Sequence record: NC_074654.1 | Length of the DNA: 18,655 bases | Reading direction: 5' to 3' (one strand) | Shown here: piece by piece, positions 5,621-16,007 of the stretch | How positions within the stretch are numbered: position 1 is the first letter of the stretch | Layout: the number at the start of each line of letters is the position of its first letter | Position numbers and translations under genes: made by a program | The notes under the pieces: model-generated | The model's database searches: none | The model's input: only the letters and a program-made list of their open reading frames with translations | What the model was told of the DNA's origin: nothing

Positions 5621-6376
5621 TTACGGCTGGACGGTGAACTGATAGGTCCCGGGCTGACTCGTGTATATGCCCCAAGCCGGCAGTATTCCCGAGGGAGGCG
5701 AGGACCACGACCCTAGCGATATGGTCACCGGGTTGCCGTTGACGTAGGCCGTGCCGTGGACCACGTATATCCTGTAGGTGGCGCCCGATATAGGCATGCC
5801 GTTATCGCTAGATGCCGGCACGTAGACGTAGTAGAGCAAGCCCGTTATGTTATATGTGTAGGCCGTCAGTAGAACCGCGGCTTGGGCCGGTTTGTAGAGT
5901 ATATAGCCATAGCCGGCCGTCGCGTTAGCCCATACATACACGGTGCCTGAGGTGTCGGTGAAATTGAGCGTAGGCGTGGTGGTCGCTATGCCGAATAGGT
6001 ACAGCTGATAGCCGTTCACGGTCACGTAGGCGTTGCCGTAGGTTATATTGGCCGACTTGACGGAGCCGCCATAGGCGATTATGTCGTAGAGCGACCCAAA
6101 CCCTTGGGCGCTATAGGTGCATGAGCTGGCGCCGCACGTGACATAGCTTGGCACGTACACCAGGGAGGCCGGATTAGCCGGCCCGCTCTTGGGCTGGAGG
6201 GTGCTGACGGGTGCGCTAGTCGTGGTGGTGGTGGGGCTGGGCGAGGGTCCTGTGACCACGGTGCCGGACCTGCCGGTCATGTAGAGCCATATTATGTACC
6301 CCAAGACCGCTATGATTATCAACGCAACGACGGCCATGGCCGCCCTTTCGCGCGACCGATTGTGTATATTGGCCAT
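5621..6376 (-). CDS. Membrane-anchored S/T/P-rich, beta-rich surface protein with class III (pilin-like) signal peptide motif
   Basis: Charged n-region RSRERA|AM then hydrophobic helix; PSPSPTTTTTS linker; four ectodomain N-x-T sequons; Tyr/Thr/Gly-rich body. Confidence 0.8.
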   Translation of the reverse strand: MANIHNRSRERAAMAVVALIIIAVLGYIIWLYMTGRSGTVVTGPSPSPTTTTTSAPVSTLQPKSGPANPASLVYVPSYVTCGASSCTYSAQGFGSLYDIIAYGGSVKSANITYGNAYVTVNGYQLYLFGIATTTPTLNFTDTSGTVYVWANATAGYGYILYKPAQAAVLLTAYTYNITGLLYYVYVPASSDNGMPISGATYRIYVVHGTAYVNGNPVTISLGSWSSPPSGILPAWGIYTSQPGTYQFTVQP

Positions 6377-6394
6377 GTGCGGATAGTGGCGCGG

Positions 6395-6404
6395 ATATAA
6401 ATAT
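6395..6404. promoter_or_regulatory. Bidirectional TATA element (ATATAAATAT)
   Basis: Centred between divergent ATGs at 6376 (-) and 6423 (+), about 26-27 nt from each. Confidence 0.75.
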
Positions 6405-6422
6405 ACTGAGCTCTATTCCTCT

Positions 6423-7280
6423 ATGCAATTAAGGGACCTGTTTAGGGCGGCCGCCTCTACGGCCGCGATAGCCTCGGGGCTTGCCGTATTCGCCCTAGAC
6501 CCTACGCCGATAGGCCTATTGGCGGCCCTAATGTACGCCGGATTCGCATACGCCATATTCCAATATTGGGGTCAGCTGGAGAACCCCCTATTGATATTGC
6601 TCTACGTCCTCATGGTGTTTGCCGTGGCCATAAACGTCTACCAGCTGGTGATTTTCGCGGCCGTCGTGATAGCCCTCGTGGTGGCCGCTAAGAGGCCCAG
6701 CCTGGCCACGAGGCCCGGCCCCACCTTGGTCTATCCCCTAAGGCTTGCCGGCCTGGCCGCGGGGATATTGGCCGCGCCCCTAATACTGTGGTATGAGGCC
6801 ATACGGAGGGGCACGTGGCTCTACCGCCTCTATATGGTCCTCGGAGGCATAGGCCTAGTCCTAGCCATGGTGGGGCTGGGCTTCGACGTGAGGCCCATAG
6901 CCTCCCTCCTTGCGACGCCCATGCTGGGCCAATACCTCCAAATTGAGCCCGACGCCTCGCCTCTGTGGTGGCTTGGGGCCATAGGCTGGGAGGAATTCAT
7001 ATCGAGGGCCGCGGGACCCATGGGCAACGCCTTTTGGGTCATATTGCATTTTCCCACGAGGTACCTAATCATAGGCGTGCTTGGGGCCATAGGGGCCGTG
7101 TCCTATATCCAGATAGGCGCCCGGTGGCTGTGGGACACCTATGAGCGGGGAGGGATTATAGGGTCCCTCATAGGCCATGCGACCTACAACGCGGTGCTGT
7201 CCCTATTGATAGAGGTCCCCATTACGCTATGGCCCTTGGTCATTATTGCCGCGATAACATTATACTTCGTCGGGTGCTGA
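6423..7280 (+). CDS. CPBP/Abi (type II CAAX protease-like) intramembrane glutamic/metalloprotease
   Basis: All three family motifs in order in a multi-TM protein: EEFISR (EExxxR, 6990-7007), FWVILH (FxxxH, 7032-7049), HATYN (HxxxN, 7176-7190). Confidence 0.88.
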   Translation: MQLRDLFRAAASTAAIASGLAVFALDPTPIGLLAALMYAGFAYAIFQYWGQLENPLLILLYVLMVFAVAINVYQLVIFAAVVIALVVAAKRPSLATRPGPTLVYPLRLAGLAAGILAAPLILWYEAIRRGTWLYRLYMVLGGIGLVLAMVGLGFDVRPIASLLATPMLGQYLQIEPDASPLWWLGAIGWEEFISRAAGPMGNAFWVILHFPTRYLIIGVLGAIGAVSYIQIGARWLWDTYERGGIIGSLIGHATYNAVLSLLIEVPITLWPLVIIAAITLYFVGC

Positions 7281-7374
7281 TTAGGGGCAACGCCATGGTG
7301 AACGGCACGATATACGGCAACTATACGGAGATACCCTGTAAATAGCCATATAAAACGCCCACCTTTTTCCGGCC

Positions 7375-7761
7375 ATGAGGGCCATAGCTTTGGCATTGGC
7401 TATACTCATGATAGCCATAGCGGCCTACTACCTCATGAACCCTCCCAAGCCCAAGGTGGTGGTCGTGGGCCCGCCTCAGACCGCGACCAATACAAATACA
7501 ACGCCTCCCACGTCAACGCCTCAGACCCCGCCTCCGGCCCAGCAATACATATGCAATTCAACCATGATATCGGTGGACGGCGTGAGGGCTTGCGGAGTTA
7601 TCCAATACCAATACCCCACGGTGGTGGTGGCCGCGCCCGGCTGGCTTGCCGGCAAATTCCAGATAGCGGGTATCCAAGGCGCATGCATATTCACCGTGCA
7701 ATATGGCGAGGTGCTGGTGTCGGGGCCCGGCTGTGTGGTAACGATAAATATCCCCTCGTGA
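7375..7761 (+). CDS. Signal-anchored protein with P/T-rich linker and small Cys-containing beta domain
   Basis: N-terminal hydrophobic helix, PPQTATNTNTTPPTSTPQTPPP linker, 4 Cys; ATATAAAA at 7348-7355. Confidence 0.82.
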   Translation: MRAIALALAILMIAIAAYYLMNPPKPKVVVVGPPQTATNTNTTPPTSTPQTPPPAQQYICNSTMISVDGVRACGVIQYQYPTVVVAAPGWLAGKFQIAGIQGACIFTVQYGEVLVSGPGCVVTINIPS

Positions 7762-9150: not shown

Positions 9151-9753
9151 ATGCGGAAAGTCCCAATACCGCTAGTGTTTGCGGCCATAGCCCTAGCGGC
9201 CGTTACCGTAATGCTTAACGTGGCCATGTCATCTATAGTCACATATCAAGGGACGCCCATAAGCCTCGGAGGCGGCTGGATAGCGGTCAACGCAACGACC
9301 CAAGGCCATGCCTACGTCAACGGCACCATGAGGTACGTCGTGATACCCGTGGTGTCGATATACGGCAAGACCCTGACCAATATCACGGCCGGCAACGTCC
9401 TGCTATTCAGCACCTCTACCGCCAAGTGCGCGGCCGTGGCCTATAACCAATACTACATTGGGTTTCAGCTCTACAACAATAGCGGGCTTTGGACGCCCTT
9501 GGAAGGCCAAGGGTCGTGCCCAGCCCAGATAGGGGCCAACAACGTGACCTATATCACCGGCATAGCCGTGAACGCGACCGGCGTGACGCTATATACGGCC
9601 GCGGGCACTTTCTATATTCCCGCCATATACGTGGGCGCGGGGCAGAATTTCGGGGCCGGCGTAGGCAACTACGTGAACCTGGGCAACGGCTTGGTGGCCG
9701 AATACTACTACTACGTTATCACTAACGGCACGTCGGTCAAGATAACCACCTAG
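9151..9753 (+). CDS. Secreted/virion beta-rich glycoprotein, MRK[IV]PIPL-leader family member 1
   Basis: MRKVPIPL plus hydrophobic helix; 7 N-x-S/T sequons; Tyr/Gly/Asn/Thr-rich. Confidence 0.85.
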   Translation: MRKVPIPLVFAAIALAAVTVMLNVAMSSIVTYQGTPISLGGGWIAVNATTQGHAYVNGTMRYVVIPVVSIYGKTLTNITAGNVLLFSTSTAKCAAVAYNQYYIGFQLYNNSGLWTPLEGQGSCPAQIGANNVTYITGIAVNATGVTLYTAAGTFYIPAIYVGAGQNFGAGVGNYVNLGNGLVAEYYYYVITNGTSVKITT

Positions 9754-11919: not shown

Positions 11920-12663
11920 ATGATAATCCCGCTAGCATTGGGGTCGCTAGCCGCCTTGATACTCGTGGCCCTAATGGGGAGCCGCAACATGCTGGTGTAC
12001 ATACTTATAGAGATATTCGTGTCGGGGGCCTTGGCCCTTGCCGGCGTTGCCGCGTCCACATACGCCCTATTCTCGGGTCTATTCATAGCGGCCATGGCCC
12101 TATGGATAATAACCCACGTAGAGGAAAGGGTGGTTGAAAGGGCCGTGGTGACGCTTTTATCGGTGACCCTGGTGTGGGCCTCTAACAACGCGGTGGCCGC
12201 CCAAGCCCTAGGCGCCCTATCCTATGACATAATCGAGCCCTTCTTCGCGGCATTGGCCACGGTGGGGGACGTGGTGCTGGGCGTCTCGGGCTTCGGTGCC
12301 CTATTCGCCTACATGGTCCTATCCAGCCGCATACTGTCGCTAGCTGAGGAAAACCCGCTAGTGGCTATAGGCTATGTCTACCTCGCCAATGCCGTCCTGT
12401 CGGCCTTGGTGGCGCCCATGCCGGACTTTCTCAAGCTTGCCCTAGGCCTGGCCTTGCTGTACCCGCTAGGGAGGGCCATTAGGGGCAACCTTGAGGCCCT
12501 AGCTGAGGTCGCGCCCGTCCTCTACCTCCTGCCTATCCAGCCCTCGGTCCTGGTACAGCTGGGTGCGGTCATGGCCCTCGTGGAATTGGCTATGGCGATA
12601 CTGTCGCGCAAGCACTTGGTGGGGGCCGCCATGTGGGCCGCGGCCTTGCTATTCGTGGCATGA
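11920..12663 (+). CDS. Polytopic membrane protein (about 8 TM)
   Basis: Almost wholly hydrophobic; ATG 11920 is 26 nt after TATAAAT (11894-11900). Confidence 0.82.
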   Translation: MIIPLALGSLAALILVALMGSRNMLVYILIEIFVSGALALAGVAASTYALFSGLFIAAMALWIITHVEERVVERAVVTLLSVTLVWASNNAVAAQALGALSYDIIEPFFAALATVGDVVLGVSGFGALFAYMVLSSRILSLAEENPLVAIGYVYLANAVLSALVAPMPDFLKLALGLALLYPLGRAIRGNLEALAEVAPVLYLLPIQPSVLVQLGAVMALVELAMAILSRKHLVGAAMWAAALLFVA

Positions 12664-13568
12664 GCTCGTTCATACCGGACCTAGCCGAATACTCGGCCCT
12701 TTTAATACTCGCCATTTTCCTGCCCACCTTGGTCTATGGCGCCATGTCCATGTACCTCGGACCGTCGCCTAACCTGTTTATTATCCAGGCAATAGCCCTA
12801 GCGGCCGTGACCGTAAAGCTGGCTAGGGAGAACCTATTTGACGGGGTTCTATTCGCGGCCGGGGCCTCGATATTCACGGCCATAGCCTACCTCGTGCCCG
12901 TCCCCAAGCTATTCATAGAGGGCTTTAGCGCAATATTGGGGCCCTTTATCAACACCCTGCTGAGCACCGTCATAGAGTTCTTCGCCTTCGGCCTCGCCAT
13001 AGGGGCCATTATGGGCCTTGCCGGCATATTCGTGTCGTTCATAGCCGGCATTATCGGCTTTCTGCTAACGGCCTTTATCATGATATTCGCGAGGCTGTCC
13101 AGGCTGGTGTATGAGGCCACCGAGGCGGCCACGTCACTATTCATTAAGGCCGTGCCGGAGGGGGTCGGAGCCGTCCTGGCGCCCTACTTCGGAGGCATTG
13201 TCATAGCGGCCCCCATAGCCGTGGCCATATCGGTCATAGCCGCGGCCGCGGCCCTATGGCTTGGCATGCTCATAGGCATGGCCATAACCGGCGTGCTATT
13301 CCTCAACGTGAACCTGATACTCTACGGCCTGGCCTCGATATTTTCGGCCGTGTTGCTGAGGCCGCAGTCAATTCCCGTCATAGACATGGCCATGGACATA
13401 GCGGCCCTTGTCCTGGTGCCCTACGTGGTGCCCGTCCTGTGGACCGTGGGCTATGCCTTGCTGTCAAGCCGGAGGTACGCCCACCGCGGCATGTACTTTA
13501 TCGGCATATCGGCCGCGGCCGTGGTGGTCTACGCCCAAGCCGCCTCTATCCTCACGGCCATAATTTAA
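12660..13568 (+). CDS. Polytopic membrane protein (about 9 TM), transporter-like
   Basis: ATGA coupling with the previous gene; Gly/Ala-rich TM helices. Confidence 0.82.
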   Translation: MSSFIPDLAEYSALLILAIFLPTLVYGAMSMYLGPSPNLFIIQAIALAAVTVKLARENLFDGVLFAAGASIFTAIAYLVPVPKLFIEGFSAILGPFINTLLSTVIEFFAFGLAIGAIMGLAGIFVSFIAGIIGFLLTAFIMIFARLSRLVYEATEAATSLFIKAVPEGVGAVLAPYFGGIVIAAPIAVAISVIAAAAALWLGMLIGMAITGVLFLNVNLILYGLASIFSAVLLRPQSIPVIDMAMDIAALVLVPYVVPVLWTVGYALLSSRRYAHRGMYFIGISAAAVVVYAQAASILTAII

Positions 13569-14276: not shown

Positions 14277-15038
14277 ATGCGCAAGATCCCAATTCCGCTA
14301 ATCGCGGCGGCCGTATTCCTGTCGGCCGTGACCATATACATAACCATAACCATACAGACCATACTGTCCTATGACCCCACATATGTCAGTTTCAACGGCA
14401 CTAACTATATCGTGACCGTGTCGGGCTCTAGCCCCTACGACACCTTTCCGCCCATGTACATAGACGTGGTCAATATCTCACAGGTGTATACGGTGACCTC
14501 GATAGGCTATGGGTCCTCCGACACTTGGTATACATGCCAGGCTGGCGGGTGCGACATAGGCCTCACGATTGTCAACTTCCCCAGCATGCCCAATGCGACG
14601 GCCCTAAATCCCAAGTCCGGCGTGTACGTCTACAAGATGAACACCGGCAACGTGGTGCTGGTGTACGGCACGGCCACCACCTCCGGAGGCACGTCGGGCT
14701 ATATCATATGGCCCTACGTCCTTGTCGCGACGTCCGGGTCGGAGTACTTCTTCATCCTGGCGACCCAGGCACAGACACCGGCCTCTACCATATGCTCAAT
14801 GTCCCCCTTCAGCACGGCCGGCACGGCCGTTATCCAGGCGAGGGACGCCTACTATGTGTGTCCCCTCGCCTCGTGGTCCTCAGGCACGTCCTCCCTTGTC
14901 AAGACCGGATACGTGTCCGTGGGGGCCGGCACGTCGCTAGGCTATAAGGAGATCTATTCCTACTCGTGGGGGTCGATAATCCTACACCCGTGGTACTACG
15001 TGACGTCTAGCGCCTATATCGTGGGCAAGCCAAATTAA
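14277..15038 (+). CDS. Secreted/virion beta-rich protein, MRK[IV]PIPL-leader family member 2 (fibre/adhesin candidate)
   Basis: MRKIPIPLIAAAVFL start at 14277, not the track's 13944; S/T/Y/G-rich; 3 sequons; 4 Cys. Confidence 0.85.
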   Translation: MRKIPIPLIAAAVFLSAVTIYITITIQTILSYDPTYVSFNGTNYIVTVSGSSPYDTFPPMYIDVVNISQVYTVTSIGYGSSDTWYTCQAGGCDIGLTIVNFPSMPNATALNPKSGVYVYKMNTGNVVLVYGTATTSGGTSGYIIWPYVLVATSGSEYFFILATQAQTPASTICSMSPFSTAGTAVIQARDAYYVCPLASWSSGTSSLVKTGYVSVGAGTSLGYKEIYSYSWGSIILHPWYYVTSSAYIVGKPN

Positions 15039-15059: not shown

Positions 15060-16007
15060 ATGCGCAAGATACCCATACCGCTAATAATAGCGGCCGTATT
15101 CCTAGTTGCGGTGGCAATATACATAACCTACACGGTGAACACGGCCGCACCGCCTATATGGACGTCGGCCGCTAACCAGACCATAAACCTGGTGACGCCC
15201 CAGACATATTTCATCTACGGCACGGAGTTCAACAGGGTGGTGGACGGCAAGTCCTTGACCACGGTGAGCCAGCTGGGCTCTAGGCTGGCCACGATAGCCG
15301 TGAACAACACGGCCTATATACCGTGGATAATTGTAAGCGAGTCCAAGGTGTCGGGCTCTATAGGCTCACCCGATATAGGTGTGGGTAGTGCCACGATTAA
15401 TCTGCCCATGCTTCTCGCCATGGCCTACAACGAGAGCCAGCTGGCCAGCATGTACGGCACTAACACCATATGTGTCACGATAAACGGGACGTCGGTGACC
15501 CTCCAGGTCAACCCCTCGGGGGCGCCCGGGTATATCGCGCTAGGCTATGTATTCAAGAACTCTTACAATTATCTATTCGGTCTAGAGGTTGAATACTACT
15601 ACGTGGGCAAGGTCGTGACGGCCAACGGCTTTACTTGGTACATGTACCTACTCGCACCCATGGCCGGAGCCGCGACGGGCAAGATAACGCTATCAACCTA
15701 CGCCTGTAGTTACACCACGTCCTCAGCAATACCGACCGAGGTCACGCAGGTCGGCGTGTCGGGCTATCTACCTTATGTAACTATTTATTATAATTCGGGT
15801 TATTCGGGTTATACAAACTTTAATTTCCAATTCACCCAGGTCGCTAACGTGACCACAAGCACCACGCCCGTGTCGGTGCCGGCTGGGTCGGGCTCTACCA
15901 TATATGGGCCGGGCACAAACCCCATGGTGCTGGGCGTCGCTCTGCCAATGGAGGCCTACGCTTTCCCGGTTAATAACGGTCCGGTGCAAATAACCTATAG
16001 CCCGTAA
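15060..16007 (+). CDS. Secreted/virion beta-rich protein, MRK[IV]PIPL-leader family member 3 (fibre/adhesin candidate)
   Basis: MRKIPIPLIIAAVFL; 5 sequons; TTAATAAA 25 nt upstream. Confidence 0.87.
   Translation: MRKIPIPLIIAAVFLVAVAIYITYTVNTAAPPIWTSAANQTINLVTPQTYFIYGTEFNRVVDGKSLTTVSQLGSRLATIAVNNTAYIPWIIVSESKVSGSIGSPDIGVGSATINLPMLLAMAYNESQLASMYGTNTICVTINGTSVTLQVNPSGAPGYIALGYVFKNSYNYLFGLEVEYYYVGKVVTANGFTWYMYLLAPMAGAATGKITLSTYACSYTTSSAIPTEVTQVGVSGYLPYVTIYYNSGYSGYTNFNFQFTQVANVTTSTTPVSVPAGSGSTIYGPGTNPMVLGVALPMEAYAFPVNNGPVQITYSP

Follow-up and report, generated by a model that had tools for sequence, protein, structure and literature searches.

What is the function of GP7, a gene of the hot-spring archaeal virus TSPV1 (GenBank MT047590) that occupies positions 6423–7280 on the plus strand of the window analysed here, the whole 18,655-nucleotide stretch of DNA from sequence record NC_074654.1? 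Its open reading frame (ORF) begins with ATG, is open throughout and encodes 285 amino acids (aa). It matches exactly an annotated coding sequence (GP7; QIM61612.1), the product of which is labelled "hypothetical protein". This label is shared by all 31 genes of the TSPV1 record, and GenBank assigns GP7 no function; about 98% of globulovirus proteins are unannotated. A hidden Markov model (HMM) of the PHROG 35488 family, which itself is without known function, matches GP7 over residues 1–284 (E = 4.2e-48). In the preprint on PSV2, HHpred could name only 4 or 5 proteins, which do not include ORF15, the orthologue of GP7 (bioRxiv 10.1101/2020.01.16.907410). In the literature searched, no paper brings together CAAX and Globuloviridae, and the only paper found for 'archaeal virus' and CPBP is unrelated. 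GP7 is read here as a polytopic membrane protein, probably a highly diverged and compact glutamate intramembrane protease of the CPBP/Rce1-like type, which most likely matures viral membrane proteins.

The three motifs that the earlier note had read in the protein, EExxxR, FxxxH and HxxxN, are all present in that order (coordinates are on the plus strand unless stated otherwise). Motif 1 is EEFISR at residues 190–195 (6990–7007), at the start of a transmembrane helix, and its E190, E191 and R195 are equivalent to E140, E141 and R145 of MmRce1. Motif 2, at residues 204–209 on the next helix, opens a stretch with a family-specific extension, FWVILHFPTR (7032–7061). Its core, F204-W205-V-I-L-H209 (7032–7049), is strictly WxxxH (or Fx4H) in TSPV1 itself; the –4 position is F in most relatives (e.g., FVLLH) and F, W or M overall, and FxxxH is thus valid for the family. 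Motif 3 (HxxxN/D) is HATYN at residues 252–256 (7176–7190), with H252 and N256 equivalent to MmRce1 H227 and N231. An alignment of 20 homologues, with identity down to 23%, retains only 11 invariant columns (W183, G185, E190, E191, R195, H209, P211, G244, H252, Y255 and N256), and six of these 11 are the CPBP motif residues E190, E191, R195, H209, H252 and N256. The only two histidines of GP7, H209 and H252, both lie in motifs. The ordered motif set was recovered from none of 200,000 shuffled versions of GP7. Other conserved features are specific to the family: an H-x-P-x-R sequence past motif 2 (P211 invariant, R213 nearly so), an RWLWDxY turn between the motif-2 and motif-3 helices (RWLWDTY in TSPV1, 7122–7142; W235 and Y240 nearly invariant, R234 in most members), and two additional N-terminal helices.

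A six-frame search of the four globulovirus genomes with PF02517, the CPBP model of Pfam, returned one match in each of three genomes, always at the orthologous gene and spanning motifs 2–3. The scores were 15.7 bits in TTSV1 (E = 2.6e-4), 11.2 bits in TSPV1 (residues 202–258) and 9.9 bits in PSV, all below the gathering threshold of 22.4 bits; PSV2 gave none. The same model searched against E. coli K-12, which is 250 times larger, gave no match at E ≤ 0.01. For profile–profile comparison, a CPBP reference set of 44 genes was assembled, comprising 29 from Thermoproteia, which we take from the GTDB taxonomy to be the class that holds the hosts, and 15 from other archaea; their genomes were reached through a match to an archaeal 16S primer. 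HHalign scored the GP7 family at 34.3 against the Thermoproteia CPBPs (P = 3.8e-4) and at 32.2 against all 44 (P = 9.2e-4), and always placed H209 on the motif-2 histidine and H252/N256 on the HxxxN motif. Controls scored 8.7–22 (P = 0.025–0.95), whether the alignments were reversed or replaced by those of four further membrane-protein families from globuloviruses. Against a short subgroup of the CPBPs (171–191 aa, with 27 residues from Glu to His), all three motifs were aligned. In an ESM Atlas feature search, which serves as a lead only, the three nearest clusters were PF02517 families (scores 0.86–0.88), two of them from Thermoproteota.

The predicted fold points in the same direction. AlphaFold2 run with 5 sequences gave an unusable model, with a predicted local distance difference test score (pLDDT) of 50, while a 20-sequence alignment gave a pLDDT of 89.9 and a predicted template modelling score (pTM) of 0.88. 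The latter model has about 10–11 helices, approximately six of them in the N-terminal 180 residues, and agrees with the BFVD model of its TTSV1 orthologue (TM-score 0.76), which was predicted independently and was the only match of a BFVD search. Among 48,161 structural comparisons, the top two were SpdC and Rce1, both CPBP-family structures, and the model has the helical fold of the Rce1 type. Neither Foldseek against the PDB nor an ESM Atlas shape search gave a significant match; the structures that came up resembled transporters. The core of the model, residues 51–265 (6573–7217), superposes on MmRce1 (chain residues 8–240) and on SpdC (10–224), and the Rce1 alignment ends nine residues past the motif-3 Asn in both proteins. 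The alignments begin at model residue 51 or 52, and the two preceding helices (residues 3–25 and 29–49, within residues 1–50; 6423–6572) have no counterpart in Rce1 or SpdC. The earlier note had described an extra N-terminal bundle of transmembrane helices; around six helices do precede motif 1, but only these first two are additional to the Rce1 fold. Its assignment of GP7 to the CPBP/Rce1 type with intact catalytic residues is supported by the fold search, the profile–profile alignments with their controls, the sub-threshold PF02517 matches, the invariance of the motifs and, as a lead, the language-model neighbours. We are confident, short of certainty, that GP7 is a remote CPBP homologue lying outside PF02517 as it is now modelled.

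Several observations weigh against a CPBP protease. A standard Pfam scan of 9 family members yielded neither PF02517 nor any other match at E ≤ 10, an NCBIfam scan of GP7 yielded no match, and the family profile matched nothing among PDB sequences at E ≤ 10. The earlier note had proposed an HMM search with PF02517 as its check and the lack of a match as refutation; formally, the assignment fails on this count, as the best score in any of the genomes stays below the gathering threshold, which GP7 itself does not reach. The family profile also matches no protein of cellular origin in a set of 1.84 billion representatives. The distance from the motif-1 Glu to the motif-2 His is only 19 residues, outside the typical range of about 27–42 seen in the 44 archaeal CPBPs and well below the 33 of MmRce1, and in the secondary structure that DSSP assigns to the model, residues 180–207 form a single helix. 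The clustering of E190, H209, H252 and N256 around one cavity is inferable only from the equal offsets with which the Rce1 alignment ends and from the gaps against the short CPBP subgroup. These gaps in GP7 are two in number and of 4 residues each, and lie one on either side of the turn that separates motifs 1 and 2. Because they are symmetric, the sequence suggests a transmembrane hairpin in which each arm is about one helical turn shorter, which would keep Glu and His opposite each other.

Among the closest described counterparts is MmRce1 (PDB 4CAD; PF02517), a type II CAAX prenyl endopeptidase with a Glu/His dyad and a His/Asn oxyanion hole, in which a tryptophan, W169, precedes the motif-2 histidine H173 by four residues (PMC12067869). 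GP7 shares with it EExxxR, (F/W)xxxH and HxxxN in the same order, as well as a Trp at position –4 of the motif-2 His (W205/H209), and by analogy would use the same dyad and oxyanion hole. In such a mechanism, E190 of motif 1 and H209 of motif 2, positioned on the two hairpin arms, would activate water, H252 and N256 of motif 3 would stabilise the oxyanion, and R195 would line the cavity floor. The two proteins differ in that GP7 is virus-encoded, scores below the Pfam threshold, has two more N-terminal helices, and is more compact in its motif spacing (Glu to His, 19 vs. 33 residues; His to His, 43 vs. 54). Judged from its sequence, GP7 is likely to be an active protease.

Genomic context favours a role in maturation. 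BLAST comparisons among the four globulovirus proteomes identify GP7 as a core gene, and the order of the CPBP-like gene, one variable gene (none in TSPV1), GP8, GP9, GP10 and VP1 is kept in all four viruses. The GP7 orthologue therefore heads a conserved block that ends in the coat protein gene VP1. In PSV and PSV2, it is located directly 3′ of VP2, and the stop and start codons of the two genes overlap or abut. Within this setting, GP7 would mature or trim viral membrane proteins while the enveloped virion assembles. A true CPBP protease might alternatively act in defence or competition, through superinfection exclusion, through immunity, or by cutting host envelope proteins (a receptor, pilus or S-layer anchor) during chronic infection. 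The same fold and motif evidence applies to such a protease, and immunity proteins are among the known bacterial CPBPs. Globuloviruses establish chronic infections and leave the cell non-lytically (PMC12662056); a virus living in this way could profit from exclusion, or from reshaping the envelope locally in order to bud. Genes for accessory defence tend to vary, however, whereas GP7 belongs to the core genome, keeps its order in a structural block and follows VP2 directly in two of the viruses, and its sequence names no host target. A defensive or competitive role is consequently considered unlikely.

Two further explanations dispense with proteolysis by GP7. The protein might have the CPBP fold yet serve as a membrane scaffold or regulator that organises viral envelope proteins, in the manner of SpdC/LyrA or the streptococcal CPBPs that interact with CovS. 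SpdC is described without protease activity and acts as a scaffold and partner of the glucosaminidase SagB. This S. aureus protein (PDB 6U0O) is the best structural match of GP7, at 9% identity, and the shortened hairpin might not permit catalysis. The non-catalytic CPBPs known to us have lost the motif residues, whereas the six motif residues of GP7 (E190, E191, R195, H209, H252 and N256) are all invariant among homologues as distant as 23% identity, a pattern typical of an active site that has been maintained. Another non-catalytic CPBP regulator is described in a recent preprint (PMC13692083). We give a non-proteolytic scaffold the lowest probability of the explanations considered. Only slightly less improbable is that GP7 is unrelated to CPBPs, being some other polytopic membrane protein (a structural component of the envelope, for example, or a transporter) with conserved polar residues that came to resemble the CPBP motifs through convergence or chance. 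Against this stand the two CPBP-family structures at the head of the structural comparisons, the register of motifs 2 and 3 in HHalign at scores well above the controls, the recurrence of sub-threshold PF02517 matches at this gene in three of the genomes, and the failure of shuffled sequences to reproduce the ordered motif set.

If GP7 is a maturation protease, candidate substrates are offered by a group of proteins that share an N-terminal leader followed by a transmembrane helix. In TSPV1, these are GP13 (9151–9753; leader MRKVPIPL, 9151–9174), GP23 (14277–15038; leader MRKIPIPL, 14277–14300) and GP24 (15060–16007; leader MRKIPIPL, 15060–15083), of which GP24 is reportedly the filament protein. 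The near-invariant leader and its helix head 14 proteins across the four viruses, at 3–4 per genome, including VP3 of PSV and PSV2, and the consensus across genomes is R-(I/V/F/W/Y)-P-(I/V/M)-P-(L/M). A strict DNA form of the leader, which left out MRIPIPL and GTG/TTG starts, was found twice in 351 Thermoproteia genomes compared with four times in the reversed control; neither match was followed by a transmembrane helix, and the frequency is at chance level. The filaments of TSPV1 are up to 500 nm long (PMC10970483), and filament subunits can hardly all remain membrane-anchored. The proline-rich start of a helix beside a transmembrane segment is also a place where an intramembrane protease could plausibly act, and for these two reasons the leader proteins are the best substrate candidates. 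That GP13, GP23, GP24 and the VP3 proteins of PSV and PSV2 are in fact cleaved by GP7 is speculative, since the sole basis of the link between GP7 and the leader is their co-occurrence within one virus family. Prediction of a complex between GP7 and residues 1–50 of GP24 gave a score of 0.00, which counts neither for nor against binding. A possible alternative, which would also tell against the maturation of these proteins by GP7, is that they are processed by a host signal peptidase or left uncleaved. Conserved C-terminal motifs of the CAAX type were not seen in TSPV1 proteins, which makes prenyl-CAAX processing by GP7 unlikely.

Taken one step further, the co-occurrence could reflect a private sorting system of globuloviruses, in which GP7 recognises and cleaves the MRK(I/V)PIPL leader and transmembrane helix of surface proteins, including the filament protein and VP3, and thereby frees or activates them for assembly of the envelope and filament. 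We put this forward very tentatively. It would resemble the sorting-signal CPBPs, namely the myxosortases with their MYXO-CTERM signal and MroQ with the AgrD leader, in that one membrane protease is accompanied by several proteins carrying a short terminal signal beside a transmembrane helix (PMC11980579; bioRxiv 10.1101/516906). The globulovirus leader differs from the myxosortase and MroQ signals in being N-terminal and without Cys, and its tie to the protease is one of co-occurrence. If correct, such a system would give viruses an N-terminal equivalent of sorting by sortases, exosortases and myxosortases. We know of no dedicated signal-and-protease pair in an archaeal virus.

As a predicted intramembrane protease, GP7 would stand out as a rare candidate enzyme within the envelope and structural block. 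It belongs to the core genes of the family, offers clear catalytic residues for mutation and provides a concrete handle on how the envelope is built in enveloped viruses of hyperthermophiles, and on the filaments of TSPV1. The CPBP superfamily would also be widened by a virus-only clade, in which the catalytic hairpin appears to be shorter, by about two helical turns, than that of every cellular CPBP in the sample, with a bearing on the minimal working active site.

The GP7 family appears, from sequence searches, to be confined to globulovirus-like viruses. Orthologues were found by tblastn in all the other sequenced globuloviruses (TTSV1 gp11, PSV2 ORF15-300 and PSV gp21), and a word-indexed protein search added four close homologues of metagenomic origin. 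In an exhaustive profile search of the 1.84 billion representative proteins, no more than 16 clusters reached E ≤ 1e-3; apart from one artefact caused by a low-complexity repeat, they form one small family without a Pfam domain. A word-based protein search with the family alignment at E ≤ 10 recovered family members only and no twilight-zone CPBPs. A pattern search with tblastn confirmation, in which 185,579 species were represented by a single genome each, identified no prokaryote relatives, and a scan of IMG/VR with peptide patterns identified no GP7 loci. Every distant member for which a contig was examined adjoins homologues of globulovirus genes, these being VP1, VP2 or the cation-exchanger-like GP2. 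Between GP7 and the Thermoproteia CPBPs, with which it aligns in HHalign, there is no detectable direct sequence similarity, nor is there with other cellular CPBPs, and a host origin of the gene therefore cannot be demonstrated; the phylogeny against host homologues that the earlier note had suggested is not feasible at such divergence. The most distant clade (320–333 aa) is represented by metagenome contigs only (L164:147–2140, L165:1973–3966, L008:1–1902 and L166:2–1341), and its CPBP-like gene is found immediately 3′ of a cation-exchanger-like gene homologous to GP2. On contig L165, the order is VP2-like, ORF315, VP1-like, GP2-like and CPBP-like. The contigs of this clade represent globulovirus-like genomes in which the genes are arranged differently.

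Upstream of GP7, a TATA-like box, ATATAAATATA (6395–6405), can be read in the sequence about 23 nucleotides (nt) 5′ of the ATG. GP6 is encoded on the minus strand from 6376 and is thus divergent from GP7. A second TATA-like box, ATATAAAA, is found at about 7348–7355, roughly 20–25 nt 5′ of the GP8 ATG. These boxes suggest that GP7 and GP8 each have a separate promoter and are expressed from leaderless or near-leaderless mRNAs. Metatranscriptome contigs from a hot spring (runs X12 and X17; window positions 5650–7670) derive from a relative with 95–97% identity and cover GP6 as well as GP7–GP8. The same relative is uncovered over the divergent promoter (6228–6435), and its depth falls approximately ten-fold past GP8, while DNA runs are flat. 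This uneven depth is weak evidence, compatible with transcription of GP7–GP8 in nature and not proof of it.

The 3′-end of GP7 differs between the TSPV1 isolate and its environmental relatives. At positions 7264–7273, relatives from three runs carry 214 other nucleotides where TSPV1 has 8, and in one of them the GP7 frame continues to IAKPFAHA-stop, as in two homologues (P0002 and P0003). This insert and the IAKPFAHA ending indicate that the GP7 C-terminus of the TSPV1 isolate, which ends in YFVGC, is altered and shorter. The interval between GP7 and GP8 is shorter in TSPV1 by about 200 nt, and TTSV1, PSV and PSV2 have an additional gene at this place, encoding about 130 aa.

A second conserved membrane protein, GP20 (12660–13568), has about nine transmembrane helices and orthologues in the other three viruses (TTSV1 gp21, PSV gp17 and PSV2 ORF9). 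No motifs or function were found for it, and its HHalign scores against CPBPs (14–22) are background. In TSPV1 and TTSV1, GP20 is located immediately past VP2, the position held by the CPBP-like gene in PSV and PSV2. The two genes that flank GP7, GP6 (5621–6376, minus strand) and GP8 (7375–7761), encode proteins that, like their orthologues, begin with an N-terminal transmembrane helix and continue into a linker rich in Thr, Pro and Ser (e.g., TTTTTSAPVSTLQP). This linker looks like the stalk of surface proteins and may be glycosylated.
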